Shown here one piece after another: positions 8,231-61,999 of a DNA stretch of 64,000 nt. The notes below the pieces were generated by a model. It searched no databases, had not been told where the DNA came from, and was given only the letters and a program-made list of their open reading frames with translations. A program made the translations under genes and the position numbers. Each line of letters starts with the position of its first letter. The stretch's first letter is position 1. Location of the stretch: positions 1 through 64,000 of IMG/VR virus record IMGVR_UViG_3300046808_001241, one strand, 5' to 3'.

Positions 8231-8254
8231 GAGGGTTTGATTAAATAAAATAGT

Positions 8255-8620
8255 ATGAAGAATAAAGATACTCAATTACTAGAAGAAGCTTACGAGAAAG
8301 TCATGGAACAATCCTTTCCTGTTGGCATGAAAGAGAAGATCGAAAGGTATGCAGAGCTTTCAGACCCTGATGCCGAATTAGATACAGAGGAAGAAATGGA
8401 ATTGAGCGATCTACAAAAGTGGGCTGAACAACATGGAGTAATTGACCATTTCGAGAAGCATGCAGAGAGCGCTCATTTTGGAAGAGGTATGTCAGGACAA
8501 GCTTCTGATCCTCTAGCATTCAGACAAAAAATGATGAATCCTCTGAGAGTTACTAAAGCCGGCAAAGCTTATTCCCAAGACATTCAAGGCAGAAAGAATT
8601 TGATGCGAAACATCAAATAA
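8255..8620 (+). CDS. putative late internal head protein
   Basis: TAAATA at 8242; N-terminus MKNKDTQLLEEAY is shared with 14378. Confidence 0.7.
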   Translation: MKNKDTQLLEEAYEKVMEQSFPVGMKEKIERYAELSDPDAELDTEEEMELSDLQKWAEQHGVIDHFEKHAESAHFGRGMSGQASDPLAFRQKMMNPLRVTKAGKAYSQDIQGRKNLMRNIK

Positions 8621-8631
8621 CTTAAAGAAAA

Positions 8632-8678
8632 TTTCATAACAGTATAGAGAGAGGTCTTCGGGCCTCTCTTTCTTTTTG
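8632..8678 (+). terminator. TTTCATAACAGTAT followed by UUCG terminator hairpin
   Basis: GAGAGGTC-TTCG-GGCCTCTC then a T tract. Confidence 0.8.
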
Positions 8679-8713
8679 TTGACCTGTCTTGCAGACTCTC
8701 TGACTATAGACAT

Positions 8714-8941
8714 ATGAGCACACACAACTATAGGCAAGACATGGAGCGGATGGAAGCCAAGGAGAAGATCGAGCGGCTTGAATGGGAGCTAGCTTGTGAG
8801 AAGGAGTGGACTGAGAAGCTGCAGAAGATAGCACGGGAGCATTATAAAAGTGCAGAGACAGCTAGACAAGAGCGAGACGAGGCTCGCAAAGATGCAGAGT
8901 ACCACAAAGCCCGCTACGACGTACTGAGGGAGAGCTGGTAA
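8714..8941 (+). CDS. early coiled-coil hypothetical protein
   Basis: after promoter 8679. Confidence 0.75.
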   Translation: MSTHNYRQDMERMEAKEKIERLEWELACEKEWTEKLQKIAREHYKSAETARQERDEARKDAEYHKARYDVLRESW

Positions 8942-9202
8942 CATCTTATAACTAAACGACTTATCAATATTGTGGAATGTGTCTTCGCTGGGGGAGTGTT
9001 CGAGGGCCAGTGGGTGGGACTGGATGAAGTGGAAGTAGTGGAGAGCTTCCAGAAGCAATTGGTTCCCAATAATAGGTTTATAACTTCTCCCTTCTGTACG
9101 TTCTTTTATAGGGGCAACAAGTACACGTCTCAGGTGACAAAGAGGCCGACATGGGTCTTTGAATAGTTGACCTGTCCTATAGTCTCCCTGAAAGTCTTTC
9201 TC

Positions 9203-9430
9203 ATGCACACAACCCAAACTCTCATCAATCAACTGATCAAGACTCTCGCCGAACAACTCCGGGCAGTTGATAATGCTACTCTGGGACTGAAGAGTACCTA
9301 CAAGAAGATCGCTCAGTGTTCCAAGACAGTGGCACAGCTTGAGAAGCTCGGAGTGGATCACAACACAGCATACGACAGGGCTGACTTGATCAATGGAGTA
9401 GCGGATCGCGAGACTCTTGGAATGGCTTAA
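9203..9430 (+). CDS. early hypothetical protein
   Basis: after promoter 9167. Confidence 0.75.
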   Translation: MHTTQTLINQLIKTLAEQLRAVDNATLGLKSTYKKIAQCSKTVAQLEKLGVDHNTAYDRADLINGVADRETLGMA

Positions 9431-9434
9431 TACT

Positions 9435-9698
9435 ATGATACTCAATCTATTCCCTCACCTTAAAGGCTACAAAGTACTTCATGGATCTCCGGGGTGCGAG
9501 ACTCCAGAGACTATCAAATCGATTCGGACTGATAGGATTAAGAAGAGCTTCCTGACTCTAGAGTTCGACAGTGGAGTCTTCACCTACATTAACAAAGAAG
9601 ACTTTGATCGGTTCCTGGAAGAAGGAAAGGTATACTTCCAGCGAGCGGCAGGCAGGATGGGCTTCGAAGCTCCAGAGAGTTTGGTTGACCTGTCCTGA
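9435..9698 (+). CDS. hypothetical protein
   Basis: ends inside motif 9685; start uncertain. Confidence 0.65.
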   Translation: MILNLFPHLKGYKVLHGSPGCETPETIKSIRTDRIKKSFLTLEFDSGVFTYINKEDFDRFLEEGKVYFQRAAGRMGFEAPESLVDLS

Positions 9699-9723
9699 GA
9701 CTTTATAGAATATCAATATCGTT

Positions 9724-10062
9724 ATGAGAATAAATACTCCATTCACAATCACTAGCCGTATTGCAGAAGCTCTTGGACTTCCTGACAGCCATATGGCGGA
9801 TGCTCTTCTGATCACTCGGTACAAAGCTGTTGCAGAGATTGTCTCCAGCTTCCTGAACTATACAGATAACAAGATCGCTTCTCAGCAAGGGTTCTTTGCT
9901 TCTATGATCATTCGGATCCTTCTCCCTAATGACAAGGCCGTGCACTTCTCTGATATGCAGACGGTTATCAATATCATCATGAATGGGGAGAAGGCTATAC
10001 AGGAAGAGATGAAGCAGGAGAGGGAAGACTGGAGAGCGGCGCGGGAACTTGCTACTGCTTAA
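9724..10062 (+). CDS. early hypothetical protein
   Basis: after promoter 9685. Confidence 0.75.
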   Translation: MRINTPFTITSRIAEALGLPDSHMADALLITRYKAVAEIVSSFLNYTDNKIASQQGFFASMIIRILLPNDKAVHFSDMQTVINIIMNGEKAIQEEMKQEREDWRAARELATA

Positions 10063-10068
10063 GACTTT

Positions 10069-10239
10069 ATGGAAGACACTACTCCTTCTTATGAACAGCT
10101 TTACATGGAACACCAGAGAGTCCTGGCTGAGTACTATAGAGACTCTGTAGACTTCCATAAGCAGATCATACAGCTTAAGGACGAGCTAGCAGAAGCAAAG
10201 CTAGCCCTACAAAACCAATCCTCAAAAGAAAGAAAGTGA
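10069..10239 (+). CDS. small coiled-coil protein (56 aa, not in ORF track)
   Basis: open frame filling the gap before promoter 10249. Confidence 0.55.
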   Translation: MEDTTPSYEQLYMEHQRVLAEYYRDSVDFHKQIIQLKDELAEAKLALQNQSSKERK

Positions 10240-10283
10240 TCTTATCTATTGACTTGTCCAACGATTGGTCTTAATATTATCTC

Positions 10284-10856
10284 ATGATTAAAACAGCTAA
10301 GAAGAAAAAAGCAGCGAAGGGCAAAGGGTTCAAGATTAAACCAATCCCGTTGAGTGAAGAGCAGATCACAATGTTTGTTAGTCATTATAAACAGTTTAAG
10401 TCTTTTCCTGGCTCAAAGATCCCTTGCACTATTACTGGAAAGCTAACTACTTGTGTAGGGCCTTGGATGCAGAAGAAGATCAAGGAGTTCGGTTCAGCGG
10501 AGTCCTTGTTGCGCAACTACCAATGCAGGGGAGCTCTTAAAGACCAAAGGATTAAAGCAAAGCCTCAGAAGGTTAAACGGAAGAGTAAAGTAAAGGATCT
10601 TATTGAAAAGGAAGAGGGTAAGTATAACATTCCTTCCATGGATAGTTTTGTAAAGCCCACACCATATGATCCCGCAAAAGAATCTGAGTCCGTCTGCTTG
10701 CGGCCCGATATCTTTCTGTCGAACGATCGGCATTGTGATGGATGTCACCACTTTAAGATCTGCCGCAGCCGTCTCAAGAATCTTCCAAAGCATGTTTCAT
10801 TTGATGGAAACAGCTTTGTGTACGATGAAGGTTACAAGACAAAGAAAAAGAAATGA
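10284..10856 (+). CDS. Lys-rich early protein with Cys/His cluster, possible nucleic-acid binder
   Basis: very basic; C-x9-H-C-x2-C-HH-x3-C; promoter at 10249. Confidence 0.75.
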   Translation: MIKTAKKKKAAKGKGFKIKPIPLSEEQITMFVSHYKQFKSFPGSKIPCTITGKLTTCVGPWMQKKIKEFGSAESLLRNYQCRGALKDQRIKAKPQKVKRKSKVKDLIEKEEGKYNIPSMDSFVKPTPYDPAKESESVCLRPDIFLSNDRHCDGCHHFKICRSRLKNLPKHVSFDGNSFVYDEGYKTKKKK

Positions 10857-10969
10857 TCTGGTACATCTATATAGCCTTCATGTCAATACTGATTACTGTC
10901 AACCTCTATGAGTGGTACAAAAAGGTAAAGTAGTTGACGTGTCCGAAGCCTTTCCGGAATATAGACAAC

Positions 10970-11482
10970 ATGACACAGAAGAAGATCTCAATGAATAGGC
11001 GGAAGCTTTCTTCGCCGTACTTCTCAATAAGAAAGGAGAAGGTCAAGTGGCCAACTATCCGCGGAGCATATATGACGGATAGCAATGTGCCTGTACTCAA
11101 AGACTTTGTAACGAAGAAGGGTCGTTCGATTATCTTTCTGGATGGGAAGTATGATACTACTCTGAATCGTTATAAGAATCTTCCATCCGAAGAGCGAGCG
11201 ATCGCTTGGGAGTTCATGTGCAGAGAGAATGGAGTCAAAGGAGGGATCTTCATGCTGTGCTGGCTTGGGAACTTCCACAATGGGTGCATCTTCCATGCCT
11301 CTCCTCAGTTCCCACAGATTCAATGCTGGTATGAACAGATGGGAGTAGAGAGGGCTAATGCGTTCTTCGAGAGGCAAGCATTCAAGATCTATAACGAAGT
11401 GGTAAAGATTGTACACAATGGTGGTTCGATTGTGGATAAAGAAGTGCAAGAGTTTATAACTAATGGCACCAACAAAGTTTAA
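10970..11482 (+). CDS. early hypothetical protein
   Basis: after promoter 10934. Confidence 0.75.
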   Translation: MTQKKISMNRRKLSSPYFSIRKEKVKWPTIRGAYMTDSNVPVLKDFVTKKGRSIIFLDGKYDTTLNRYKNLPSEERAIAWEFMCRENGVKGGIFMLCWLGNFHNGCIFHASPQFPQIQCWYEQMGVERANAFFERQAFKIYNEVVKIVHNGGSIVDKEVQEFITNGTNKV

Positions 11483-11483
11483 T

Positions 11484-11681
11484 ATGACAAAAGAACGACA
11501 AAAACAATTAGAAGATTGCGAGCTTATGCTAGGAAGGATTGCCAACCTGGTGCAAGAGTTCTGTGAAGAGGATGAGACTACCTTGCAAGGAGTTGCAAAG
11601 CTTGTTGCAACCTATAGAGATTATCAAGCACAAGAAGCTTGGGACTTTGTATACTCCTTGCATCTGAAGAAGAAGATATGA
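11484..11681 (+). CDS. hypothetical protein
   Basis: tightly packed ORF. Confidence 0.6.
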   Translation: MTKERQKQLEDCELMLGRIANLVQEFCEEDETTLQGVAKLVATYRDYQAQEAWDFVYSLHLKKKI

Positions 11682-11875
11682 AGATCGTAAAAGTCCCTAT
11701 AGAACTATCCTTGATGAGCTACTTTGATGAAGCACACAGTTCTCTTGTAATGGCTGCTGAGGTTGCTCATTTCGAAAAGCATCCAGAAGCTCAGAACATT
11801 TCTGAACTAATCGATACATTGGAAGAAATTATTCTAAAGGTTTGTGACGAGACATCTTTAACACAAAAAACATGA
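11678..11875 (+). CDS. hypothetical protein
   Basis: ATGA overlap. Confidence 0.6.
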   Translation: MKIVKVPIELSLMSYFDEAHSSLVMAAEVAHFEKHPEAQNISELIDTLEEIILKVCDETSLTQKT

Positions 11876-12054
11876 CAATGCCACTACACATTCAAAGGTC
11901 CCTTGTGACAGCTCTCTATACTACTATAAGTGTTTATTATCCGTTGCGAAATAAGCAGCTTGCGGCGCGCGAGTACGTTAAGCAATCTATTGAGGCTCTG
12001 AGGTATATTCAAATGAATACTCCGGGCGAGGACTGGATAGCGGTAATGATGTAG
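11872..12054 (+). CDS. hypothetical protein
   Basis: ATGA overlap. Confidence 0.55.
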   Translation: MTMPLHIQRSLVTALYTTISVYYPLRNKQLAAREYVKQSIEALRYIQMNTPGEDWIAVMM

Positions 12055-12078
12055 GGGAGTTGTAGTTTAAATAAGTTT

Positions 12079-12684
12079 ATGAAATTTGATGAGGCAATAG
12101 ACACCTATCTAGCTACATCATTCTTTGTGGAGAGTCCGATGTATTATGATGGGTTGTTTAATGAGCAGATGAATGACATTGAACACAATAAACAAATTGC
12201 TCAGAACATCATATCTAGCAACAAACCTTTTGATAGATTTGAAAGTTGGGTTGTATATAGAGTCGTTGATGGCTTTGATGAAGACATACGGACGTTTTGT
12301 TTAATTAAAGATGGGTTAGTTGATGCTTTTATGGAGATAGCAACTAGTAAAGACAACTACTTCAGCAGAGGAGTGTGGCAGAGAAACACGGCTGATAATA
12401 AAGGTTTAATTAGAAACTTTATTCTTAATTTTTTACCAAAGCACTATACTTCATTAATCTCCGACAAAACAGCTAACAAACTGGGCATTAAATTTTATAA
12501 AAAACTTCTAGATGTTTGCATACAAAAAGGATTAAAAGTGACCGTTCTTAAAGGATCTCTTAAAAACGAAATTCCTTATCATGCAAATCAGTTTGAAAGC
12601 TATTGGCACAATGTCAATAGAGATGTTCCTACGCATCCTACATTCGTAACAACAAAGGATGATTTGTTTAAGATTTATTTTTGA
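12079..12684 (+). CDS. ESP-family paralog 1 (possible GNAT-like fold)
   Basis: TAAATA at 12068; VESP, SDKTANKLGIKFYKKLL, FESYWH, LFKIYF match 61397 and 13782. Confidence 0.75.
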   Translation: MKFDEAIDTYLATSFFVESPMYYDGLFNEQMNDIEHNKQIAQNIISSNKPFDRFESWVVYRVVDGFDEDIRTFCLIKDGLVDAFMEIATSKDNYFSRGVWQRNTADNKGLIRNFILNFLPKHYTSLISDKTANKLGIKFYKKLLDVCIQKGLKVTVLKGSLKNEIPYHANQFESYWHNVNRDVPTHPTFVTTKDDLFKIYF

Positions 12685-12704: not shown

Positions 12705-13073
12705 ATGAAGGTCGTTAAGCTTTTATTGTTGTCTGTTGTTATAAGTGCTTGCACGAGCAATCCACCCACAAATGTTCCGGAATGGGTCGGTAAGATGAAG
12801 AATGCATGCTTGCCGGAAGCAATTGTAATGACACAAGGGTTGAAGGCTAGCGGTATACAAGCAAAGGTGTTGTCAATTCACACAAAAGATTGGGGACATG
12901 CTACATGTGTTTATATGTATCCTCCGGGCCGGAACAAATTGTGGGTATGGGATAGCCATTGGCAATCTGTTCCTCTGAGAGCTTTTTGGAATGATCCAAA
13001 CTCTGTTGCAAGAGCATGGATGAAATGGAGATATGACGAAACTCCGTTAACAAACGTTTACTTTCAAGAATAG
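12705..13073 (+). CDS. lipoprotein with putative Cys-His-Asp (papain/transglutaminase-like) triad
   Basis: lipobox ISAC; NACLP, WGHATC, VWDS; TAAATA at 12690. Confidence 0.65.
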   Translation: MKVVKLLLLSVVISACTSNPPTNVPEWVGKMKNACLPEAIVMTQGLKASGIQAKVLSIHTKDWGHATCVYMYPPGRNKLWVWDSHWQSVPLRAFWNDPNSVARAWMKWRYDETPLTNVYFQE

Positions 13074-13508: not shown

Positions 13509-13766
13509 ATGGACGACATTCACATTATTGAACAGAAGGACCGAGTTGTTATTCAATCTTATTTTAAACTCAGACACAATCATAACAACTATACGTTTGT
13601 TGATTATATTTACGAAGATAGTGGAGAGCCGCTCGAGTGTGGGGAGTTCAACTCAATCTTCAATATTAGCGGCAAGCTGGTGGATAACGAAGAACTTAAG
13701 GATACAATTGGTCAGTTTTGTAATCTGGTACGGACTTGTAGAAAGGTTGTGGTAGTTGATAAATAA
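13509..13766 (+). CDS. hypothetical protein
   Basis: 85 aa ORF. Confidence 0.65.
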   Translation: MDDIHIIEQKDRVVIQSYFKLRHNHNNYTFVDYIYEDSGEPLECGEFNSIFNISGKLVDNEELKDTIGQFCNLVRTCRKVVVVDK

Positions 13767-13781
13767 CTTCTCTGAGAAGAA

Positions 13782-14369
13782 ATGACTTTAAAATTTGAAA
13801 AGTTTCTAAATTACTATAACAGACACGAAAGAATTCTAAATGAATCTCCGGTTAGATTAGGAAGACAATACAGCGAAGAGTTAGACAACAACTGGTTTAA
13901 TGTTGAAACGGCTAAGGAAACTTTAGAAGATTCCTCGTTTGAGAAAGTTCTTTCGAAAGAAGTATTTGACGTTAATTTAAACTTATTTAGAGATGTTTAC
14001 GAAGAAGATAAGTTTCAAGATTATTGGATGACTGATCAGCCGTTTATAAGTTGTTATTTTCTTTTTCAAAAGTCTGGAAAAGGTTTACAATCACTGAGAG
14101 TTTGGAACCATAAAGCATTTAAAGGAACTGCAAAAGATTTGTTTTTTTCTTATTATTTGCAAAATTTTGATTTTATTATAAGTGATAACAAACATTCTGA
14201 TCAAGGAGAATCATACTGGAAGAAGATTGTTAAAATTGCTCGAACTAACGGAAACGCAGTTACAGTTATTGCCAGAGACGGAATCGAAAGCGATCTAAAA
14301 AATTTAGATGGTCTTTGGGGAAGTTCTGAAGAGTTCTCAAAATTTAGAATTAAAGTTTTTAAAAGATAA
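13782..14369 (+). CDS. ESP-family paralog 2 (possible GNAT-like fold)
   Basis: TAAATA at 13760; LNESP, SDNKHSDQGESYWKKIV. Confidence 0.75.
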   Translation: MTLKFEKFLNYYNRHERILNESPVRLGRQYSEELDNNWFNVETAKETLEDSSFEKVLSKEVFDVNLNLFRDVYEEDKFQDYWMTDQPFISCYFLFQKSGKGLQSLRVWNHKAFKGTAKDLFFSYYLQNFDFIISDNKHSDQGESYWKKIVKIARTNGNAVTVIARDGIESDLKNLDGLWGSSEEFSKFRIKVFKR

Positions 14370-14377
14370 ATAACTTC

Positions 14378-14668
14378 ATGAAATCCAAAGACCAACAACT
14401 CCTAGAAGAAGCTTATACTAAAATCAACGAACAAGAAGAGCAAGGCTTTAGTTACTACTCCGGTCCCTCGGAAGATGTAATGTTCTTAGAAGATTTGGAT
14501 GTAGACAACTTTAAAAGAAAAGTTCAAGAGGGACAGCACTTTAAAACAGCTTATGTTGCTCATAAAGCTGATGCTGTGAACTACGGATATCCGGACGAAG
14601 GAGCTCATGAGTTTTATGTTTTTTACGACAAACAAGACTTTGCTCATCCTGCGTTGATTCCTGTCTAA
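14378..14668 (+). CDS. putative late internal head protein
   Basis: TAAATA at 14367; MKSKDQQLLEEAY. Confidence 0.7.
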   Translation: MKSKDQQLLEEAYTKINEQEEQGFSYYSGPSEDVMFLEDLDVDNFKRKVQEGQHFKTAYVAHKADAVNYGYPDEGAHEFYVFYDKQDFAHPALIPV

Positions 14669-22457: not shown

Positions 22458-22796
22458 ATGAAAATAACAAATATGTTACTGTTAGCTTCTGTGTCATTGA
22501 CACTAATTGGGTGCACGACTTATCCAAAGACTTATACATACAGTCCGACCGTTACCATTAACGGAGACAACAATTCGTCAACTCCTTTGGTTCTTCCGAA
22601 TCCGTTTGCTAAAACTCCTCGAGCTAAAACAGAACACAATATAAATACTACCCAACGAATTTATAGTTATCAAGAACAACCAAGTCCTCTGACTGCCCGT
22701 ATTCCTGAGCCACCTGTTTCAGCAAATTATTATCCAACTTATAATCGTGAAGAAACGTACGTATTTGTTGGTCCAGAATACCTCCAAGCTAACTGA
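22458..22796 (+). CDS. Thr/Pro/Tyr-rich lipoprotein
   Basis: LLLASVSLTLIGC lipobox. Confidence 0.75.
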   Translation: MKITNMLLLASVSLTLIGCTTYPKTYTYSPTVTINGDNNSSTPLVLPNPFAKTPRAKTEHNINTTQRIYSYQEQPSPLTARIPEPPVSANYYPTYNREETYVFVGPEYLQAN

Positions 22797-29149: not shown

Positions 29150-29758
29150 ATGAACCGAACAATATTAATTGCGTGCATTGCAATATTGTTGCTTCCGTCC
29201 TGCACTGTATATACAGAGAAGCAATCAGAAGTTTTGTCACAATCAGCCTATTTAGCAGATGATTCGTTTGAGGCCGGTCGTTTTGATGTAACCGACTCTG
29301 CCTTAGATAATGTAATCCGGATCGTCAAACCTCCAAAACAAAGACTGCAAATTAAAGCAATCGAAACACCAACCTCTTTAACTTCTTCTTCTGAAGGTTC
29401 AACGCAAAAAAATACAAACACTGCTGCTAATCAAAAAATTGTAATAGTTCCTGAAAAATTCAAAAACCAACAAATAGTGGTCGTGAATTCTGAAGAGTTT
29501 CAACAGTTAATAAAAGACAAAAAAATACTCGAGCAATTACAGGGTGATCATAAAATTCTTAATAAATTAAAAGTAGATATTGAACAGGAGCTTGCAAAGC
29601 AAATAGCTTACAACAATAAAATGGTCGAGGACTTAAACAAACTACAAAAAGAATTGTTATCAAAAAAACTTCTTATCTTAAAATTGTACATAATTATAGC
29701 AATAATGGTATTGGTAATGGGGGGAGGAGTCTATCTTAGATTGAAAGGAATTTTATGA
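29150..29758 (+). CDS. lipoprotein with coiled coil and C-terminal TM, putative unimolecular spanin
   Basis: lipobox LLLPSC; C-terminal IIIAIMVLVMGGGVYL; TAAATA at 29139. Confidence 0.65.
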   Translation: MNRTILIACIAILLLPSCTVYTEKQSEVLSQSAYLADDSFEAGRFDVTDSALDNVIRIVKPPKQRLQIKAIETPTSLTSSSEGSTQKNTNTAANQKIVIVPEKFKNQQIVVVNSEEFQQLIKDKKILEQLQGDHKILNKLKVDIEQELAKQIAYNNKMVEDLNKLQKELLSKKLLILKLYIIIAIMVLVMGGGVYLRLKGIL

Positions 29759-34804: not shown

Positions 34805-35135
34805 ACAAAGACAGTACATAAACTGGAGCTACAATAATTATTTCCCCACAAATAAAACCAGCCACCAAAGCTAGCCAAAAGTTTAAGCAAAACGGACAGC
34901 TAACTAACTTTAATAAAAATTTTAAAAATTTGTTTGTGTTTTTTAATGATTTTTTATACAAAAAGTCTGGAAGAAAATCGTTTTTATTTTCTGATATATG
35001 CGATGTATATTGCAGTCTTAGATTTTCCCAAATACCAAATAGCTGACTATAGTGAACAAACCAATCTGTACAAAACCAAATAATAGAAATCGCTGAAATC
35101 CAAAATGTAGAGTAAAAAATTTGTTCGATTAGCAT
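34773..35135 (-). CDS. membrane protein with CPFC motif
   Basis: LVSCPFCLNFW between hydrophobic segments; probable start a few codons inside. Confidence 0.65.
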   Translation of the reverse strand: MLIEQIFYSTFWISAISIIWFCTDWFVHYSQLFGIWENLRLQYTSHISENKNDFLPDFLYKKSLKNTNKFLKFLLKLVSCPFCLNFWLALVAGFICGEIIIVAPVYVLSLFTLLQIKKMI

Positions 35136-35549: not shown

Positions 35550-35583
35550 TTTGAATTTTTCTTTTTAGTAGTATAATAAACTC

Positions 35584-37952: not shown

Positions 37953-37993
37953 TCAATTATTTATCATTAAATAGAGAAAAAGTCTTTGATTAG

Positions 37994-38001
37994 TATAAAT
38001 A
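37994..38001 (+). promoter_or_regulatory. T4-type late promoter TATAAATA
   Basis: exact T4 gp55 consensus. The core TAAATA also precedes genes at 8242, 12068, 12690, 13760, 14367, 15003, 25037, 29139, 35135 and 53899, and on the minus strand at 28975, 37958 and 42552. Confidence 0.8.
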
Positions 38002-38006
38002 ACACT

Positions 38007-38282
38007 ATGAAGAAATCTTTTGATCAATTGTTTAGTGAAATTGTTGGAGAAACACTCATGGCCCCAACACAACCCAACCAGCCACAACAAAATCAACCGG
38101 TTCCTACTGCTAACCAACAAGTTGGAGAGCTTCCTGATGAAATTGCTAAATTGTTCGTTGCTGCAAAGACTCCTCAAGAAGTAAATGCAGCATATGCTAA
38201 GCTTCAACAAATGAAACAGCAGCAACCTCAAGCCAATCAGCAAAACCAGCAGCAACAGAATGCAGTCAACAAACCAGCGTAA
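38007..38282 (+). CDS. Gln-rich putative internal head protein
   Basis: late promoter; MKKSFDQLFSEIVGE. Confidence 0.7.
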   Translation: MKKSFDQLFSEIVGETLMAPTQPNQPQQNQPVPTANQQVGELPDEIAKLFVAAKTPQEVNAAYAKLQQMKQQQPQANQQNQQQQNAVNKPA

Positions 38283-38880
38283 ACCTCAAAAAAGTAGGTG
38301 TATGTACTGTGGATCGGCTGACCACGGCAAAGGCTGTAGGTTTGGTCCACACGGGGTTCATTTTCATCCAGACGATTCCACAAAGTGTGGCTTTTGCGGT
38401 TCGACGAGTTACGGAAGAGGTTGTAGGTTGAATCCAACGTCTGATTTACATGTGCACGGTTCAAGCTTTAATTCTATGTACAAAGAGTCCGTGCAAAGCT
38501 TTTTAGATAATGAAATTCTTTTAAAAGAACTCAAAAAAGACTTCAGACAATTTCAATGTTATAAGCTTGGTATTATTGACAAAGACGGCAATAAAGTTAA
38601 AAATCCAATTACCGAACAAGAAAAACTTTCATTTACTCCGTTTGTAAAAACCGTTTTAAAGCTCAAAAAATATTTAGGTTCAAAACTTGATTTATTAGAA
38701 GCTCAAAACGACTTATCCCTTTCTTCATTGCAGCTAAACGAAAACATTGAACACTACAAAAAAGTTTTGGACTACCAAGACAAAGTAAAAACAATAGTTA
38801 ATGAACTGTATAAAACCTTAGATGAGGCAACGGAAGAAGGTCTTTGTTTAGAGGATATACAAAAATTATTAAAGGCTTGA
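38260..38880 (+). CDS. protein with two Cys/His zinc-binding repeats
   Basis: CxxCGS-x4-GxGC-x3-P...HxH twice, then KLGIIDKDG domain. Confidence 0.75.
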   Translation: MQSTNQRKPQKSRCMYCGSADHGKGCRFGPHGVHFHPDDSTKCGFCGSTSYGRGCRLNPTSDLHVHGSSFNSMYKESVQSFLDNEILLKELKKDFRQFQCYKLGIIDKDGNKVKNPITEQEKLSFTPFVKTVLKLKKYLGSKLDLLEAQNDLSLSSLQLNENIEHYKKVLDYQDKVKTIVNELYKTLDEATEEGLCLEDIQKLLKA

Positions 38881-38910: not shown

Positions 38911-39186
38911 ATGTCTAATATAAATGTAGCACTAACTGAAAAGGAACTTCAAACAGCAATTTCCGGATTGCTTTTTTCGTGTTCTGTAAATGTTGTATCA
39001 AATACAAACCTTGAGTATCAAACTGAACTTCTTCAACTTGCTAAAAAGTTGAAAGATCTAAAACCTGACATCAAACTTACTGAAATCCAATTCGTAAAAG
39101 AAGATGACTACGAGGATGAAACATCTCCGTTGATTTTGGAAGCATTTAAAAGTAATATTGAAATTACATCATTTGATTGCGTATGA
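38911..39186 (+). CDS. hypothetical protein
   Basis: 91 aa; TTGACA at 38877 upstream. Confidence 0.7.
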   Translation: MSNINVALTEKELQTAISGLLFSCSVNVVSNTNLEYQTELLQLAKKLKDLKPDIKLTEIQFVKEDDYEDETSPLILEAFKSNIEITSFDCV

Positions 39187-39617
39187 GTTATGTTTCTACA
39201 AAAATTATTGAATTAGGTTCTTGTGCTTTTCGTCAATGGCGAGCTGAGGATACCCACTGCAAGTACGTACATGGGTACCAGCTAAAAGCTAAATTTTGGT
39301 TTGAAGGAGAGCTGGACGAACGAAATTGGGTTGTTAATTTTGGAGGATTGAAAGAACTTAAATACCAACTCCAACAGCAATTTGACCATACTCTGTGTAT
39401 AGCTGTTGATGATCCTTTGGTGTCATTATTTCAACAGTTGCATGAAGCTGGAGGTTGTGATCTTCGAATCATGGGAGATGTTGGTATAGAAAAAACAGCA
39501 GAATGGTGTTTTAAGAAAGCAAACAATTACGTTAAAAACCAGACTGACGGACGTTGCAAAGTGACCAAAGTAGAAGTTTGGGAACACGATTTGAATAGTG
39601 CAATTTATACAGAATAA
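39183..39617 (+). CDS. queD: 6-carboxy-5,6,7,8-tetrahydropterin synthase
   Basis: HCKYVHGY, FDHTLC, TAE, VEVWE. Confidence 0.9.
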   Translation: MSYVSTKIIELGSCAFRQWRAEDTHCKYVHGYQLKAKFWFEGELDERNWVVNFGGLKELKYQLQQQFDHTLCIAVDDPLVSLFQQLHEAGGCDLRIMGDVGIEKTAEWCFKKANNYVKNQTDGRCKVTKVEVWEHDLNSAIYTE

Positions 39618-39621
39618 CATT

Positions 39622-40380
39622 ATGATTGATATTAATACAGAAACATTGTTCTTATCTGATGATAAGATTTTTTATACAGTAGAAGGAGAAGGGGAATATG
39701 TTGGACAGCCTTCTGTCTTTATGCGTATGTCTATGTGTAACCTTACCTGTAAAGGATTTGCTTCAGCTGATAGTCCAAATGGATGTGATTCATTTATTTC
39801 TTGGTCGATTAAAAATAAAATGACCTTTAAAGAAATTTTCGAAATGATGGAAGAAAAAAATTATGTAGAGCATCTTCGAAATAGAGCTATTTTTAAATTA
39901 ACAGGAGGGGAACCTTTCATTCAGCAGAAACAGCTTCTTAAGTTTATGGAGGCTTTTAATGAGCGTTATAATTTTAATCCTCGAATTGATTTTGAGACAA
40001 ACGCCACTTTGATTCCTGACGAGCGCTGGGTGACTGATTTTTGTGCTACCTTCACTACCTCTCCAAAGTTAACAACAAACGGAGATCCAGAAGAAAGGAC
40101 ATACAAGCCAGATGTTTTGAGATGGCACGTGGACCACAAATCTGGTTTTAAATTTGTTATTAATTCTGACAGAGATATTGAAGAAATTTGGAGAAAGTAT
40201 ATTGATGATCACGAAGGAATTAACGTGCCTCTCCAACGAGTCTGGTTTATGCCTTGTTGTGGATCTAGACAAGAACATATTGAGCGAGCTCAAGCTGTTG
40301 TAGAATATGCAAAAGCAATGCATGTAAATTTTAGTCCGAGATTACACTTGCTGGTGTTTGATATGGCACTTAAAGTTTGA
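39622..40380 (+). CDS. queE: 7-carboxy-7-deazaguanine synthase (radical SAM)
   Basis: YTVEGEG, CNLTC...CDS, TGGEP, ETN, TSPK, SPRLH. Confidence 0.9.
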   Translation: MIDINTETLFLSDDKIFYTVEGEGEYVGQPSVFMRMSMCNLTCKGFASADSPNGCDSFISWSIKNKMTFKEIFEMMEEKNYVEHLRNRAIFKLTGGEPFIQQKQLLKFMEAFNERYNFNPRIDFETNATLIPDERWVTDFCATFTTSPKLTTNGDPEERTYKPDVLRWHVDHKSGFKFVINSDRDIEEIWRKYIDDHEGINVPLQRVWFMPCCGSRQEHIERAQAVVEYAKAMHVNFSPRLHLLVFDMALKV

Positions 40381-40410
40381 TTTATTTTGAAACAACTTTA
40401 ATTAAACTTC

Positions 40411-41082
40411 ATGCGTATTGCACTAATAGGAGCTCACAGTGTAGGAAAATCTACTTTAGTTGAACAATTTCTTAAAGAGTGGCCAATGTATAAAAGGCCG
40501 GAAAAGACTTATAGAGATATCATTAAGGAAAAAAACCTTAATATCAATATGCAAGGAGACAAAGAGTCTCAAAGAGCAATTCTTAATGCGTTAGTTGATG
40601 AAGTCCAGCTTGCAAGTACTTCGGATGACAAACATATTATTTTTGATAGATGTCCGGTAGATAATATGGCTTACACTCTTTGGCACTATGCAAAAGATAC
40701 AGAAGGATTTACTTCAGAGTTTGTAATGACATGTAAAGATATTGCTGCTCTTTCATTAAAACATATTGATCTTATTTTTTACGTTCCAGCTCGAAAGGAA
40801 ATTCCTCTTACTCCAAGAGAAGGACGAGAAACAGACGAAGTTTTTAGGGAAGAGATCGACAATATTTTTGATTCGCTAGTCAATTCTTATGAAAAGAACA
40901 CAGGAGCATTTTTCCCTTCAGAAGACTGTCCTGCTGTTATTCGTCTGGAGGGTCCTCCAGACATGCGTATCCCTCAAATTAAGCTGTATATTAAAGAAAA
41001 CGGTAATTACTTTGGAGAAGAAGACGGCTCTTTAATTGATGCTTCTAAGGTAGTGTTGGACGGAGAACAACAGCCGTTTTAA
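40411..41082 (+). CDS. P-loop nucleotide kinase (dNMP kinase / AAA_28-like)
   Basis: GAHSVGKST, FDRCPVD. Confidence 0.8.
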   Translation: MRIALIGAHSVGKSTLVEQFLKEWPMYKRPEKTYRDIIKEKNLNINMQGDKESQRAILNALVDEVQLASTSDDKHIIFDRCPVDNMAYTLWHYAKDTEGFTSEFVMTCKDIAALSLKHIDLIFYVPARKEIPLTPREGRETDEVFREEIDNIFDSLVNSYEKNTGAFFPSEDCPAVIRLEGPPDMRIPQIKLYIKENGNYFGEEDGSLIDASKVVLDGEQQPF

Positions 41083-41501: not shown

Positions 41502-41907
41502 GCTTTATCTTACTTGAAAATTCGTTAAACTTTCTTTGAGGCTTCTGTTGTTTTAAACTATTTTCAGCAGCACTCTCTAAGTCTGGAGAAGTCAAATCAA
41601 ACTTACCGCAATAAGGTATTGGAAGCTGGTTCATCATTCCATCAAAATAATTGTCTATAAAGTTGCTTATTTTTTGAGTGATGGCCTTCTTTGATATGCA
41701 CATCACTTTCGGAAAAGCGCTCTGTGTACTTTTATAAGTGGCTTCTATACTTTTGAAGCAAAATCCTAACAAAATGCGTCTTCCGTCTGCACTATTAAGT
41801 CTGATGTTGTTTTTGTTAGCAAAATCAGTCGCAGCTCTTAATCCTTTTTCGAAAGAAGGATATGCATCAATAACACAAATTCGGGACTTAGGAAAGGTTT
41901 TTGTCAT
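41488..41907 (-). CDS. hypothetical protein
   Basis: 139 aa, overlaps the denA-like stop. Confidence 0.7.
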   Translation of the reverse strand: MTKTFPKSRICVIDAYPSFEKGLRAATDFANKNNIRLNSADGRRILLGFCFKSIEATYKSTQSAFPKVMCISKKAITQKISNFIDNYFDGMMNQLPIPYCGKFDLTSPDLESAAENSLKQQKPQRKFNEFSSKIKLKSN

Positions 41908-42317
41908 TTTAGGAAATTTTTAGGTGGCTTACCGATACGAACATTTATTATGCCATTGTAGAATTGTTCATTCAAGAGCACGTCATATTCCAGCTGTTTC
42001 TTTATTTCTTTATACCCCAATTCCCATTTTGATCCACCCCATTCTAAAATTTCAAAAGTAAAGTTTTCCTTGCCATGCTTTGCAATGTCTTCATTCAACT
42101 CTTTTGATGAGCCGGTATAGGTCTTCCAATCGCTTTCTTTATGGTCTATGCGGTTTCTTGTCTTTCCTTTTAATGGTTTTCGTTTGACTCGAGAAACACA
42201 TTGCTTTTTTCCAATATACTGGCGACCGTTAACATTATTGGTAATCATGTAAATGAAACCAAAAGGATTTTCGGTTGTATAAAGACTTTCCTTGATTGTC
42301 CAGTGACCGAGATCCAT
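41904..42317 (-). CDS. denA: GIY-YIG endonuclease II-like
   Basis: GFIYMITN...RQYIGKK, ESDW.TYTGSS; 137 aa, the size of T4 EndoII. Confidence 0.8.
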   Translation of the reverse strand: MDLGHWTIKESLYTTENPFGFIYMITNNVNGRQYIGKKQCVSRVKRKPLKGKTRNRIDHKESDWKTYTGSSKELNEDIAKHGKENFTFEILEWGGSKWELGYKEIKKQLEYDVLLNEQFYNGIINVRIGKPPKNFLK

Positions 42318-42318: not shown

Positions 42319-42546
42319 TTAAGACTTTTTCTTTTTTCTAGTTTTTTTCTTTTTGGGCTTGCGCATTCCAGACCGAGTCATAACTCCCTTGTAACTTCCG
42401 TACAAGTTACGTGCATCTCCAGGAGCATAATTGTCTCCACTGAATGCTGTAGCTGTTGCTCCAACATTTGGTCCAAAGGCAGATCCTTCTCCTCCAGACA
42501 TTACGTCTTCAACAAGGACTTCTTCTACAATTTTTTGAAATTCCAT
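42319..42546 (-). CDS. small late protein with basic tail
   Basis: TAAATA on the minus strand (42552-42557); MEFQKIVEEVLVED; KKKK tail. Confidence 0.75.
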   Translation of the reverse strand: MEFQKIVEEVLVEDVMSGGEGSAFGPNVGATATAFSGDNYAPGDARNLYGSYKGVMTRSGMRKPKKKKTRKKKKS

Positions 42547-42597
42547 AATAGTATTTAAGAAAATTTGTTGACATTAATACTAAGTAAACGACATTGA

Positions 42598-44848: not shown

Positions 44849-45382
44849 ATGAGTCAAGTTCTAAAAAAACCCAAAAAGAAAAAAGTTGAAGCAATTTCAA
44901 CAGCAAAAGAAAATCAACCAAAGCGAGTTAGGAGAACTAAAGAGGAACTCAAGGATGTATATATAGATCCAATTGCAATGGAAGCTTTAATTGAAGAATA
45001 TTACGCTTCGGACATCATCTCAAATCGCTTAGCTGAAATGGTTCAAATGATCGCCGTACGATTGGGGTTAGCTCGTAACTTTTACTCTTACAGCTTCAAG
45101 ACCGAAATGCAGGGAGATGCGATTGTAAAAATGATGACGGCTTTGAGAAGAAAGCGTTTTAAATGTGGATCTGGTTATAATCCCTTTTCCTACTTTACAA
45201 AAGTGGCTTATCACGCTTTTCAAAATTGTATTAAAAAATCCAAAAAAGATTTTGAAACGTTGAAGCGCTATCAGGAGGAAATTTACGAAGATCACGTTTG
45301 TACGGGTCAAATACCTTCACGTAAAAACACACGTTATGGTGGCTCTGATGACTACACACAAAATGGACACTTCGAAGATTAA
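44849..45382 (+). CDS. 55: late-transcription sigma factor gp55
   Basis: NF.SY..K.EM..DA, NPFSYFT...Y.AF...IKK.K; synteny between uvsW and 47. Confidence 0.85.
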   Translation: MSQVLKKPKKKKVEAISTAKENQPKRVRRTKEELKDVYIDPIAMEALIEEYYASDIISNRLAEMVQMIAVRLGLARNFYSYSFKTEMQGDAIVKMMTALRRKRFKCGSGYNPFSYFTKVAYHAFQNCIKKSKKDFETLKRYQEEIYEDHVCTGQIPSRKNTRYGGSDDYTQNGHFED

Positions 45383-58397: not shown

Positions 58398-58426
58398 AAA
58401 AAGGCCTCTTCGGAGGCCTTTTTTTT
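58398..58426 (+). terminator. intrinsic terminator with UUCG loop
   Basis: AAAAAGGCCTC-TTCG-GAGGCCTTTTTTTT. Confidence 0.9.
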
Positions 58427-58464
58427 GGTTGAAAAAAATTAATTTTAAAGGATATTAATCTTAT

Positions 58465-59604
58465 ATGGCTAAATCCAAAAAAACAAACGAAGAATCAAAT
58501 AGCAGTGGCTCCATCGAAGATGCTTTTGCAGTACTTGATAACTTGAATTCGAGTTCATCATTTCTAGATTCAAACAGTCTTTCGACGGTAACAGAGTGGA
58601 TTGATACCGGCTCATATGCTCTGAATGCTATTGTTTCTGGTTCTCTTTATGGAGGTGTTCCAATGGGCAGATTAACAGCTTTTATTGGAGCTGAATCATG
58701 TGGTAAGACATTGATGGCTAATAAAATTATGGCTAACGCTCAGAAGAAAGGAATGTACGTTGCTTATTTTGATACAGAAGGAGCGCTCGATCAAGCTACA
58801 GCAACACGACTTGGATGTGACCCTTCAAAAGTTAAGCACGTGCCTTCAGAAATTACAGAGCAATGTCGTAACGAAATTGTTCAATTTTTAAACACAATTA
58901 TAGAAAATAATTTGCAAGGAAAAGTCTTGATTGTGATTGACTCCCTCGGAAATTTAATTACAGCTCAAGAGAAAAAGAAAATCGAAGAAGGCTCCGATAC
59001 GGTTGATATGGGAAACAGAGCTCGACAACTTAAAAGTTTGATGAGAGCCGTTACTCATGCGGCAGCTAAGGCAAACTGTCCAGTGATTTTTACTAATCAT
59101 GTGTATGAAGATCCTTCACAACTCCATCCTTCCGCAATTAAAAAACAAGCAGGTGGTTCTGGTCCTCTTTACATGTCATCTGTGATTGTTCAGATGGCAA
59201 AGAAAACGGAACGTGCTGAAGATTCAAAAAATAAAGATGCGAATTCGGAAACTACACTAATTTCAAAAGGAATTAATGGGGTTACTTTGAGAGCTTTGAC
59301 TACTAAAAACCGCTTCGTTACTCCTTTCCTTGAAATTGAAATGTATTTGAACTTCCGAACCGGGTTGAATAAATTTTCAGGTCTTCTTGAGATGGCTGAG
59401 GGGTATGGGGTGATTGAACGGAGAGGTCATCAATTTGCATTTCAAGGAGAACTTCTTGGTTACTACAAGGACTGGAAAGAGGATGAAGAAGTGTGGAACA
59501 AAATTCTTCCTGAGCTTGAAAAGAAACTCCAGACTGAACTTTGCTTTAAGAACGAATGCCAAGTTGAACAAGAACAAGGTTTGGATGACGATTCTGCAGA
59601 ATGA
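58465..59604 (+). CDS. uvsX: RecA-like recombinase UvsX
   Basis: IDTGS..LN, GAESCGKT, DTEGA, IDSLG, GGSG. Confidence 0.92.
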   Translation: MAKSKKTNEESNSSGSIEDAFAVLDNLNSSSSFLDSNSLSTVTEWIDTGSYALNAIVSGSLYGGVPMGRLTAFIGAESCGKTLMANKIMANAQKKGMYVAYFDTEGALDQATATRLGCDPSKVKHVPSEITEQCRNEIVQFLNTIIENNLQGKVLIVIDSLGNLITAQEKKKIEEGSDTVDMGNRARQLKSLMRAVTHAAAKANCPVIFTNHVYEDPSQLHPSAIKKQAGGSGPLYMSSVIVQMAKKTERAEDSKNKDANSETTLISKGINGVTLRALTTKNRFVTPFLEIEMYLNFRTGLNKFSGLLEMAEGYGVIERRGHQFAFQGELLGYYKDWKEDEEVWNKILPELEKKLQTELCFKNECQVEQEQGLDDDSAE

Positions 59605-60962
59605 GTAAAGCTCAAGCCTCGAATAAACTAGATTTAGATTTCTTTGAAACAATTCTTTTATATAATGCATTAGGAGATTCGGAATATCTAAGCTCTATTA
59701 TATCATATATAGAGCCTTCCTTTTTCAATGATAAAAACATTGGTAGAGTTGTAGGAAGCATTAGTCAGTTTTTTAATGAACGAGGCTCTGTACCATCTCT
59801 TACAGAGATTAAGGCTCGTCTTACTTCTGAAGAAGATAAAAAGGCTTTATCTGATGTTAAAGCAAAATTGACAGCATTGCAAGGACCTTTTAACAAAGAG
59901 GAATTAATATCTAATACTGAAAAGTTTCTTAAAGAACGGTTCATATACAAAACAATATTGAACGTTGCTGATAAGTTTTCGGATCAAACATTTTCAATCG
60001 AAGAAACGCTAGTAGACTTTGAGAAAGCTTACAATATCACTCTTAAGGAAAATCTCGGCCATTGGTATTTTGAAGACATCGACAAACACATCAAAGATCT
60101 AGTTGCAATATACAACCCAGTTCCAACCGGCTGGAAATTCTTTGATGATAAAACAGAAGGAGGCTTGTATCCTAAAACCCTTACGGTTTTTGCAGGTCAA
60201 GTAAATGTAGGCAAATCGATTGTACTGGGAAATATTGCAACAAACATGCTATTGGCGGACAAAAACGTTTTGCTTATTTCTTTAGAAATGTCAGAGTTTA
60301 TGTACGCAAAGCGTATTAGTACTCAGCTTACTCAAATTCCTCATAACGATCTGAAAACATTTACAGAAGAGTTAAAGGAGCAAGTCAAACACATTCAAAG
60401 GAATATTAATGGCAAATTGATCGTAAAAGAATATCCTCCAAAAACAGTTACGGTTAGACAAATAGACGGATATATAACTAAACTGCAACACAAAGGATTT
60501 AAGCCAGATATTGTTGTAGTGGATTACATCAACCTCATTCAACCTATTTCAAAAAACTTAAACTCATATGAATATGTAAAAGAAATTGCAGAACAGCTAA
60601 GAGCACTGGCATTCAAATACAAAATCCCATTTGTTTCAGCAACACAATTGAACCGTGGAGCATTCAACACTGCTTCGCCAGGTATGGAAGGAATTTCTGA
60701 AAGCATAGGTCTTGCTGCAACTTGTGATGTAATTTGCTCTTTATGGCAAGAGGATGAAGATAGAGAGCTTGGAGTCATTAATATGGGGATGCAAAAGAAT
60801 CGTTTTGGTCCAAATTTTGGCAACGCTGCTTTTAGATGTAACTACAACACGCTAACCTTAAAAGAGACTTCTACTGATTATTTTGCACAAGATGGAGACT
60901 CTACAGAAGACAATGTGCAGAACGCTAACGGCACTCTAAATAAGTTGATCAATGAAGAATGA
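59601..60962 (+). CDS. 41: replicative helicase gp41 (DnaB-like)
   Basis: GQVNVGKS, SLEMSE, VVDYI, ATQLNR, KNRFG. Confidence 0.92.
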   Translation: MSKAQASNKLDLDFFETILLYNALGDSEYLSSIISYIEPSFFNDKNIGRVVGSISQFFNERGSVPSLTEIKARLTSEEDKKALSDVKAKLTALQGPFNKEELISNTEKFLKERFIYKTILNVADKFSDQTFSIEETLVDFEKAYNITLKENLGHWYFEDIDKHIKDLVAIYNPVPTGWKFFDDKTEGGLYPKTLTVFAGQVNVGKSIVLGNIATNMLLADKNVLLISLEMSEFMYAKRISTQLTQIPHNDLKTFTEELKEQVKHIQRNINGKLIVKEYPPKTVTVRQIDGYITKLQHKGFKPDIVVVDYINLIQPISKNLNSYEYVKEIAEQLRALAFKYKIPFVSATQLNRGAFNTASPGMEGISESIGLAATCDVICSLWQEDEDRELGVINMGMQKNRFGPNFGNAAFRCNYNTLTLKETSTDYFAQDGDSTEDNVQNANGTLNKLINEE

Positions 60963-61413
60963 CTCAGAAATTCAATTTCTAAATGAAGAAAATAAAGTAT
61001 ATGCCAGCCTATACAAGAAAACTTCTTGGGAAACAATTCGTTGTCTTCTTTATTACACAGAAGAGTCTTTAGTAGAAACTGAATTTTTTGAAAATTTTAT
61101 TAAAGAAACAGAAATTCCAGAAATACATATTTTATTCTTTGACTCTATAGAAAATTTTGACACAGAAAAATTCTTGCAAGATTTTAAAATAATTGATTTA
61201 AACATCAAAGATCTTTTTATTATTTTTAACAAAAGTTCACAACAAAAAAACGTTAAGTATCAACTTGTTGGATATTTTAAAAATTGCTTAGTTACCGAGA
61301 CAAATAATCCATTTATTAATAATACATTAAACACAAATATAAAATACGACGTTGTAAAGCTAATTACAAACCCTGGGTTAATTAACCTATTCAAAAATGA
61401 AAAACTTCAATGA
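60952..61413 (+). CDS. hypothetical protein
   Basis: 153 aa packed ORF. Confidence 0.65.
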   Translation: MKNDSEIQFLNEENKVYASLYKKTSWETIRCLLYYTEESLVETEFFENFIKETEIPEIHILFFDSIENFDTEKFLQDFKIIDLNIKDLFIIFNKSSQQKNVKYQLVGYFKNCLVTETNNPFINNTLNTNIKYDVVKLITNPGLINLFKNEKLQ

Positions 61414-61999
61414 TTTGATTAAAAGTCTAACAGACCAATTTTTGTTGGAGTCTCCCTTTTATGTTGGCAAAAAGCCACTATATATTAATTTAGATGATCC
61501 TGAGTTTAATAAAAATAAATTTGATGAAGTCGTACAAAATAATCCAAATAAGCTAGACACATTTAATGGTTACGATGTATTCCGTTCTTTAGATAAACAA
61601 ACAAGACACGACACTTTTTACTTTGTTAACAAAAATACAATCGAAGGACTAGTTGGAGTAGAAGATAAAGACGGAATTGCTTACAGCAAAGCTGTAGCAA
61701 AGAGAAACATTTCAGAAAATAAAACTCTTATACAGGATATATTTTTAAATTACTTTCCAACCATTTACTATTCTGTTGTTTCAGATGAATATATGAATGA
61801 CTTAGGAAAAACTTTTTGGAAAAAATTATTAGAACTATCTTTGACTAAAGGGTACTCTAATAGAGTATTAATTTCCAATACAGGAGAAGAAAAAGATTAC
61901 TTTCCAGAAAAGTTCGAGTCTTATTGGAACCACGAGTCAGATCCGGTAATTAGAAGACCTTCTCCTACAAGGATGTTATTTAAAATTTATTACAGATGA
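61397..61999 (+). CDS. ESP-family paralog 3 (possible GNAT-like fold)
   Basis: LLESP, SDEYMNDLGKTFWKKLL, FESYWN, LFKIY. Confidence 0.75.
   Translation: MKNFNDLIKSLTDQFLLESPFYVGKKPLYINLDDPEFNKNKFDEVVQNNPNKLDTFNGYDVFRSLDKQTRHDTFYFVNKNTIEGLVGVEDKDGIAYSKAVAKRNISENKTLIQDIFLNYFPTIYYSVVSDEYMNDLGKTFWKKLLELSLTKGYSNRVLISNTGEEKDYFPEKFESYWNHESDPVIRRPSPTRMLFKIYYR

Follow-up and report, generated by a model that had tools for sequence, protein, structure and literature searches.

Short N-terminal leaders of nine late proteins as candidate T4-type capsid-targeting propeptides in a freshwater T4-like phage

The sequence that targets the internal proteins of bacteriophage T4 to the capsid was reportedly the subject of work by Mullaney and Black in 1996. 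In T4 the internal proteins IPI, IPII and IPIII as well as Alt carry such a sequence (PMC3012670, PMC9026906). ipII and ipIII start with MKTYQEFIAE, and mutations have assigned positions 4 and 7 of this leader to targeting and positions 8 and 10 to processing (PMC9026906). In the phiKZ-like giant phages SPN3US, phiKZ and 201phi2-1 a T4-type prohead protease cuts the propeptides off inner-head proteins after x-x-E (PMC5694885). Here we analyze a stretch of 64,000 nucleotides (bases 1-64000, called the window) from the complete, 217,182-bp virus record IMGVR_UViG_3300046808_001241, which has direct terminal repeats. An original prediction, made from the letters alone, had quoted facts about T4 correctly when it described nine dispersed late genes of the window with a common leader of the T4 kind. 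All nine open reading frames (ORFs) and their N-termini are present. They are listed below and are referred to by their first coordinate; a slash marks the presumed cleavage point.

8242-8620, plus strand: class-2 leader gene; TAAATA at 8242-8247, ORF 8255-8620, 121 amino acids, MKNKDTQLLEE/AY...
12068-12684, plus strand: GNAT-like 'ESP' family member with a class-1 leader; TAAATA at 12068-12073, ORF 12079-12684, 201 amino acids, MKFDEAIDTYLATSFFVE/SP...
13760-14369, plus strand: GNAT-like 'ESP' family member; GATAAATA at 13758-13765 (TAAATA 13760-13765), ORF 13782-14369, 195 amino acids, ...HERILNE/SP...
14367-14668, plus strand: class-2 leader gene; GATAAATA (TAAATA 14367-14372), ORF 14378-14668, 96 amino acids, MKSKDQQLLEE/AY...
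35135-35549, plus strand: class-1 leader gene; CATAAATA (TAAATA 35135-35140), ORF 35154-35549, 131 amino acids, MKFDDLYNKVFICE/QD...
36588-37963, minus strand: class-1 leader gene; GATAAATA at 37958-37963 (8-mer to 37965), ORF 37952-36588, 454 amino acids, MIKFEELVESFLLE/QD...
37996-38282, plus strand: class-1 leader gene; TATAAATA (TAAATA 37996-38001), ORF 38007-38282, 91 amino acids, MKKSFDQLFSE/IVGE/T...
42319-42557, minus strand: gene of a small leader protein; TAAATA at 42552-42557, ORF 42546-42319, 75 amino acids, MEFQKIVEEVLVE/DVMSGG...KKKKTRKKKKS
60937-61999, plus strand: possible late two-gene unit; TAAATA at 60937-60942, ORF 60952-61413 (153 amino acids) and the overlapping 'ESP' gene 61397-61999 (200 amino acids, ...DQFLLE/SP...)

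The N-termini fall into two classes. Class 1 has the form M-x-(x)-F-x-x-h-h...h-x-E (h, hydrophobic) and occurs in 12079, 13782, 61397, 35154, 36588, 38007 and 42319; it is a short helical segment in which an aromatic residue occupies position 3-5, hydrophobic residues follow three and four positions later, and hydrophobic-x-Glu forms the end. Class 2 has the form MKxKDxQLLEEAY (MKxKDxQL-h-x-E/AY) and is present in 8255 and 14378, which are 74% identical over their first 19 residues only. A shared leader proper is seen in class 1, while the class-2 genes have a shared, portable N-terminus. Judged from sequence, the case for a putative T4-type propeptide is stronger in class 1 than in class 2. 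The proteins behind the leaders are of mixed kind: GNAT-like in 12079, 13782 and 61397, helical and 454 residues long in 36588, of low complexity in 35154 and 38007, lysine-tailed in 42319, and small and acidic in 8255 and 14378. None of the nine matched Pfam, and a scan against PHROG returned only phrog_1349, a family of unknown function, for two of them including 13782; 8255 matched neither collection.

As in T4, a short N-terminal leader stands on unrelated proteins, with an aromatic residue near position 4, hydrophobic residues near 7-8 and (L/I)-x-E at the end; the cargo is diverse and differs between relatives, and the genome also encodes a gp21-type protease and a scaffolding core. The critical residues of T4 are Y/F4, F7, I8 and E10; here F is followed by the hydrophobic pair at +3/+4, and h-x-E comes one helical turn later, which makes class-1 leaders 13-21 residues long rather than 10. 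The two systems also differ in that none of the leader proteins shows sequence homology to the internal proteins of T4 or to Alt, that a second leader class exists, and that the genome has at least 18 leader genes as compared with about 6-8 in T4. Packaging and cleavage have been shown for T4, whereas they are deduced here. The phiKZ-like phages likewise have many processed inner-head proteins, and diverged paralogues there keep identical N-termini (PMC5694885); their propeptides, in contrast, are mostly longer than 100 residues and end in A/S/G-x-E, while the present leaders are short with L/I in the third position from the cut (P3).

With a confidence somewhat above even, we favor the reading that the nine leaders are T4-type propeptides, which load their proteins into the core of the prohead and are cut off behind the Glu by the head protease. 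By analogy with T4, the first 10-21 residues of the nine late proteins would be a propeptide of the capsid-targeting kind. The leader would lend affinity for the scaffolding core, and the protein would be enclosed as the capsid shell forms. The gp21-type protease would then cleave after the Glu; the mature part would remain in the head together with the DNA, and some members may enter the host at injection.

The components that such a pathway would require are encoded outside the window, together with portal and neck proteins:

genome 108718-109395, minus strand: gp21-type head maturation protease (phrog_207, 2.7e-54; T4 gp21, 9e-18)
genome 107582-108547, minus strand: scaffold (phrog_237, weak)
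genome 106092-107537, minus strand: gp23-type major capsid protein

The T4 replication set is encoded within the window. The phage, which originates from fresh water, appears to be a deep-branching T4-like myovirus, a distant freshwater relative of T4. The major capsid protein is about 34% identical to that of its nearest cultured relatives, the gp23 proteins of cyanophages, and 335 related contigs are found in IMG/VR. Among 50,697 records of cultured phages no megablast match was obtained for the replication module, and tblastn against the same records found no match for 61397, 36588, another 'ESP' member or two 23-residue leaders.

The capsid and scaffold proteins allowed the specificity of the protease to be predicted. 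The capsid protein contains WCLRE/GSNS (WCL-x-E followed by G or A) slightly upstream of the conserved ...PMIRRTFPEL block, at a place which in the alignment corresponds to, or lies just upstream of, the known cut of T4 gp23, FLTE/AEIGG. Across 66 distinct relatives this site retains L/I and E, with R, N, T, S or Q between them. In the scaffold 17 [LI]-x-E sites were counted where 7.5 +/- 2.4 are expected, an excess that would be anticipated if the protein were cut into short fragments like T4 gp22. Because the site in the capsid is conserved as L/I-x-E and the scaffold is enriched in [LI]-x-E, the protease of this phage very probably follows the T4 rule (L/I)-x-E.

The likeness of the leaders was evaluated by clustering the N-terminal 12-mers of all proteins with no predefined motif, against 100 controls of each kind. 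At a strict threshold the largest cluster had eight members, as compared with a maximum of 4-6 in the controls. Seven of the eight, three from the window (12079, 36588, 42319) and four from outside it, are leader-bearing proteins that have no detectable similarity elsewhere; the remaining one, 7317, is possibly not a real gene. A second cluster of four carries MKxKDxQLLEEAY and comprises 8255, 14378 and two proteins from outside the window. A pattern taken from the description in the original prediction found 18 N-termini against 4.3 +/- 2.0 after shuffling, and it was associated with the late motif TAAATA (Fisher p = 3e-4). The same analysis of an independent related genome of 236 kb (G001), the capsid protein of which is 65% identical, gave 18 against 5.3 +/- 2.0 and an association with the late motif at p = 0.003. 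The similarity of the leaders exceeds chance.

These results bear on the alternative that the leaders are ordinary amphipathic N-terminal helices, which are never removed and belong to the fold or to an oligomerization interface, their likeness being a product of paralogy and of a bias towards MK starts. Three of the nine genes (12079, 13782 and 61397) are indeed full-length paralogues, the two class-2 genes have a common N-terminal module, N-termini in general are more alike than internal segments, and in T4 the pattern yields many false positives. Furthermore, in a structure model of the 454-residue protein the leader is predicted to continue into a long helix, residues 4-28. Against this stand the occurrence of the leader on proteins that are otherwise dissimilar and its association with the late motif in two genomes. 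The claim of a single shared leader thus holds as far as the likeness goes; it has to be amended in that there are two classes and three full-length paralogues.

The way in which the leaders evolve also speaks against permanent helices. In five families the hydrophobic P3 residue and the Glu (P1) are conserved while the residue between them (P2) is variable, as is the case at the capsid protein's own site; in two of these families a hypervariable linker follows. In the family of 36588 (17 homologues, 28-84% identity) M1, I2, F4 and V8 are nearly invariant and [LM]-x-E is present in 16 of 16 homologues that retain the leader. The leader stays nearly invariant even at 28-45% overall identity; behind it lies a linker with insertions and deletions of up to about 60 residues, and then a conserved domain. 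The 35154 protein is built in the same order, with an acidic, proline-rich linker between the leader and a conserved C-terminal domain. Its five orthologues have MKFDDLYNxVF-[IVF]-x-E with C, T, S, A, V or R at P2, the linker varies in length and sequence, and CATAAATA is found upstream in all. In nine orthologues of 8255, L9, E11, A12 and Y13 are invariant and position 10 is E or A; diverged class-2 proteins have LIAE/AY, FLQE/AY or LLSE/AY. The family of the small basic protein 118013 keeps MNFxxxVxExLxE/A. Members of the GNAT-like family have between 7 and 54 residues of leader ahead of the Glu, and yet the leader ends in h-x-E-S-P. With the leader as the best-conserved part, length-variable linkers behind it, P3 and P1 constrained as (L/I)-x-E and P2 free, the pattern looks like the signature of a recognition site that closes a dispensable N-terminal piece. 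We consider the permanent-helix explanation improbable.

The leaders use many synonymous codons (Leu TTG, CTT, TTA, CTA and CTC; Phe TTT and TTC; Glu GAA and GAG; Tyr TAC and TAT), and selection therefore appears to act on the protein and not on the RNA. On the grounds of this variety, recent gene conversion was rejected as the source of the common N-terminus of class 2.

As the original prediction had said, all leader genes except 61397 follow a TAAATA motif, which lies 11-22 nucleotides upstream of the ATG in the eight. 61397 overlaps by 17 nucleotides with 60952-61413 and would be served by the motif of this neighbor. Genome-wide, the distance from the start of TAAATA to the ATG is exactly 11 nucleotides in 26 ORFs and 12 nucleotides in 11 ORFs (37 in total), where 0.17 are expected per distance; examples in the window are 12068-12081, 14367-14380 and 37996-38009. 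The motif also precedes the genes of sheath, tube, scaffold, protease, baseplate and fiber proteins; the ATG of the capsid gene is preceded by AAGGAG instead. Because of this phasing far above expectation and the position upstream of structural genes, TAAATA is a genuine late-gene mark. The related genome G001 shows the same phasing, with 58 ORFs at 11 nucleotides. A factor that likely reads these promoters is encoded in the window:

44849-45382, plus strand: gp55-like late sigma factor, 177 amino acids (phmmer with T4 gp55, E = 5.5e-6 among the 335 ORFs of the genome; no Pfam match)

A Shine-Dalgarno-like motif was found in only three of 60 genes with a phased late motif. Since TAAATA is phased at 11-12 nucleotides and such motifs are few, late mRNAs are probably leaderless or nearly so. 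This raises the explanation that the recurring protein start is a by-product of an RNA-level signal for initiation of translation on these mRNAs. The codon variety described above largely refutes it, and on that basis it was rejected; in addition, most genes with a late motif (sheath, tube, fiber) have no such N-terminus, and the conserved Glu lies 30-60 nucleotides into the ORF. We regard this explanation as very improbable.

The location of four of the genes inside an early array was also confirmed. This array consists of 16 sigma70-like promoters, TTGACCTGTCC-N15-17-TAnAAT-like, on the plus strand between 185 and 18932. They are located in 185-10249 and at 18932, and the ATG follows about 10 nucleotides after the -10 element, often as ...ACTGTTATG. 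One of them is the following:

7934-7990, plus strand: early sigma70-like promoter (TTGACCTGTCC-N15-17-TAnAAT-like), the next copy being at 8679

Gene 8255 lies between these two copies. A late islet inside the array is made up of 12079, 13782, 14378 and a late lipoprotein gene at 12705. The G+C content is 42-44% in region 1-12000 and 33-36% in most of the remaining window.

One freshwater metatranscriptome library contains contigs that are 100% identical to the window over 35162-35615, 37141-37770, 38035-38373 and further on. They cover 35154, 38007 and part of 36588; none lies over 35616-37140, which holds the primase gene. In one contig the adapter directly precedes 35162, eight bases into the ORF of 35154, and this fits a transcript that starts at or near the ATG. 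The data are contigs, from which neither strand nor level nor timing can be read.

Genes 12079, 13782 and 61397 belong to a family of 603 clusters at 50% identity. The motif x-x-E-[ST]-P is present in 107 of 148 representatives; the majority of the remainder carry E-M/A/F/N-P instead. In the 107, P3 is hydrophobic (L, I, F, V, Y or M) in 105 and P2 is occupied by 17 different residues. An AlphaFold2 model of 61397 (32 sequences) has a mean predicted local distance difference test score (pLDDT) of 80.9 and about 90 in the core, and residues 1-19 are modelled as a detached helix with pLDDT < 50. For residues ~50-200 of the family all good structural matches are GNAT domains, such as those of GCN5/PCAF, RimL, Rv1916 and the C-terminal domains of ICL2, with a Foldseek probability of 1.0 and template modelling (TM) scores of 0.3-0.45; VIA matches of the core to GNAT domains have Z 7-8.7 and a root-mean-square deviation of 2.7-3.9 A over 104-122 residues. 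These are middling scores and the three proteins match the alpha/beta fold of GNAT only at the level of the fold. No Pfam family was found at E <= 0.01, and the family profile had no sequence match in the PDB. The acetyl-CoA loop Q/R-x-x-G-x-G/A is only partly recognizable: most members have K-G-x-A, and the Gly is lost in the branch of 61397. Because the fold matches while Pfam and the acetyl-CoA loop do not, we call these proteins GNAT-like and not members of GNAT. No member of this family was found in T4.

For the 454-residue protein AlphaFold2 gave a mean pLDDT of 71.5, in which a helical domain (residues 20-300) is modelled with confidence and is followed by a disordered stretch rich in Ser/Thr and by a conserved C-terminal end. 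Foldseek found no PDB match at E <= 0.001, and the ESM Atlas gave no usable match (structure rows with TM <= 0.32). Only the GNAT-like family is predicted to have an enzyme-like fold among the cargo; if an enzyme is delivered with the DNA, as T4 Alt is, this is plausible for the GNAT-like family alone.

Gene 42319 points to another kind of cargo. It encodes MEFQKIVEEVLVE/DVMSGGEGSAFGPNVGATATAFSGDNYAPGDAR..., followed by the lysine tail. Its residues 11-46 are 58% identical to residues 54-88 of the phage's own capsid protein (E = 7e-9), and LVE of the leader is aligned on the LRE of the capsid site. A counterpart of 58 amino acids in G001 resembles the capsid protein of that phage (E = 2e-5). 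T4 has the same architecture in gp61.1 (NC_000866, 18966-19130, locus L026), a hypothetical protein of 54 amino acids with the sequence MKTFKEFIKE/DMVAGDSGGN...KKKK: behind the leader it is 46% identical to gp23 residues 57-93 across the known maturation cut (E = 2e-8), and it ends in a lysine-rich tail. Compared directly, gp61.1 and 42319 are weakly similar (E = 0.003), since each of them is like the capsid protein of its own phage. A leader ending in h-x-E, a copy of the own capsid protein and a basic tail within fewer than 80 residues are therefore found in three phages, namely T4, this phage and G001. No description of the function of gp61.1, or of its construction from a leader and a gp23 copy, was found in the literature searched.

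Proteins of this kind raise the alternative that the leader proteins enter the prohead as assembly parts, that is as accessories of core or scaffold, and are then degraded and expelled or kept as DNA-condensing peptides, rather than serving as effectors in the next host. The 35154 and 38007 proteins would suit such a role, being acidic or Q/P-rich and of low complexity; in 38007, whose transcription diverges from that of 36588-37952, the remainder behind the leader is Q/P-rich and of low complexity. The proteins 42319 and 118013 are small and basic (isoelectric point 9.9-10.5) with lysine tails, and the likeness of 42319 to the capsid arm suggests a structural contact. The scaffold of relatives itself begins with a leader of the class-1 type, MDFKxILKEQFKDLITE, and precedents exist in T4 gp67 and gp68 and in internal peptides (PMC5694885). 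On the other hand, the GNAT-like family and the 454-residue protein are predicted to be well folded and have few internal [LI]-x-E sites, which places them closer to T4's internal proteins and to Alt than to scaffold. The present data do not separate proteins that stay and are injected from proteins that are expelled. Taken for the set as a whole, a role in assembly only is a tangible possibility, though not a probable one; for several members (35154, 38007 and 42319) the sequences look more like core or DNA-associated head proteins. The suggestion of the original prediction that the set consists of anti-defense effectors found no evidence in these analyses.

Several observations weigh against T4-type propeptides. 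Packaging, cleavage and injection are all inferred from sequence. Class 2 is the weaker assignment, since the aromatic residue seen in the T4 leader has no counterpart there. The motif is a short, helix-like one; applied to T4, the pattern recovers ipI, ipII, ipIII and gp61.1 together with more than ten proteins that are not known to be head-internal, including lysozyme, Dda, gp62 and Td. A simple regular expression was rejected after this control as a sufficient predictor of packaged proteins, and because the pattern alone predicts poorly in T4 the case rests on the further sequence tests. Mature regions are barely depleted in [LI]-x-E (20 observed and 24.7 expected, as compared with 696 and 588 in the rest of the proteome), and this depletion was dropped as evidence because it is weak. 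One orthologue of 38007 lacks the Glu at the aligned place and has F-N-E four residues earlier. The invariant E-S-P could belong to the fold or active site of the GNAT-like family rather than to a cut site. One relative from this family sits in an operon whose promoters are sigma70-like and where TAAATA is absent. Finally, the RNA-library contigs show no timing and could in principle represent DNA carry-over. We nevertheless favor T4-type propeptides, as the original prediction did, on the strength of several independent sequence tests.

A mechanism of this kind is known. Its members here, the second leader class, the size of the cargo, the GNAT-like family with h-x-E/S-P and the link to gp61.1 are not described in the literature and reference sets searched. 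If the leaders work as in T4, the combination of a late motif, a leader and h-x-E with a free middle residue would become a rule that predicts packaged, and possibly injected, proteins of many uncultured freshwater phages. It would provide concrete candidates for host takeover or counter-defense in the first minute, in particular from the very large GNAT-like family, and T4 gp61.1 would gain a testable role. Capsid targeting would also prove much older, and in much heavier use, than one would gather from the T-even phages. A wider hypothesis, which we put forward as speculative and rather unlikely in its full form, is that freshwater T4-like phages load a larger and more varied head cargo than T4 by means of two leader types, that GNAT-like enzymes are activated or released at h-x-E/S-P and injected to modify a host target, and that the capsid-arm mimics (42319, gp61.1) are a conserved, unrecognized component of T4-type proheads.

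The number of leader genes is larger than the "about nine" of the original prediction: at least nine more lie outside the window, which gives at least 18 in the genome:

genome 103825, 118013, 95668, 163382 and 206856, probably also 95048 and 93798: further class-1 leader genes
genome 78811, 102111 and 206456: further class-2 leader genes

Three genes with leader-like N-termini stand together in a late cluster at genome 93798-96522. One encodes a DUF6267 protein of 417 amino acids (...IILKE/); in relatives DUF6267 is found just 3' of the capsid gene, with ...h-x-E/GGNVR. The second, 95048, encodes a cytidylyltransferase-like nucleotidyltransferase that starts with MKTFRQFFLE/, the exact form of the T4 leader, and the third an acidic protein of 284 amino acids. 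The class-2 proteins of 78811-79266 and 102111-102668 (both minus strand) have a common internal Cys-rich motif (...GCGCGSEECDCEE... and ...GCDCTGCEECKD...), and 78811 directly follows the gene of a late protein of 1328 amino acids. The class-2 protein of genome 206456-206854 has a DUF5661 domain at its C-terminus (PF18905, 5.8e-15), and the adjoining 206856-207218 has a class-1 leader.

A SegE-type GIY-YIG endonuclease gene (window 41904-42317, minus strand) lies next to 42319, and an HNH-type homing endonuclease gene (genome 104560-105966, minus strand), which is absent from most relatives, lies between the capsid gene and the 'ESP' gene 103825. Predicted lipoproteins, with a signal peptide ending in Cys, are encoded in the window at 12705-13073 and 29150-29758 with a late motif upstream, and at 33-188, 5306-5620 and 22458-22796 without one. 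At window 39183-41082 a 6-pyruvoyl-tetrahydropterin-synthase-like gene (PF01242), a 4Fe-4S radical-SAM-like gene and an AAA ATPase gene stand in a row, which may represent a pathway for 7-deazaguanine DNA modification of the queuosine-precursor type.

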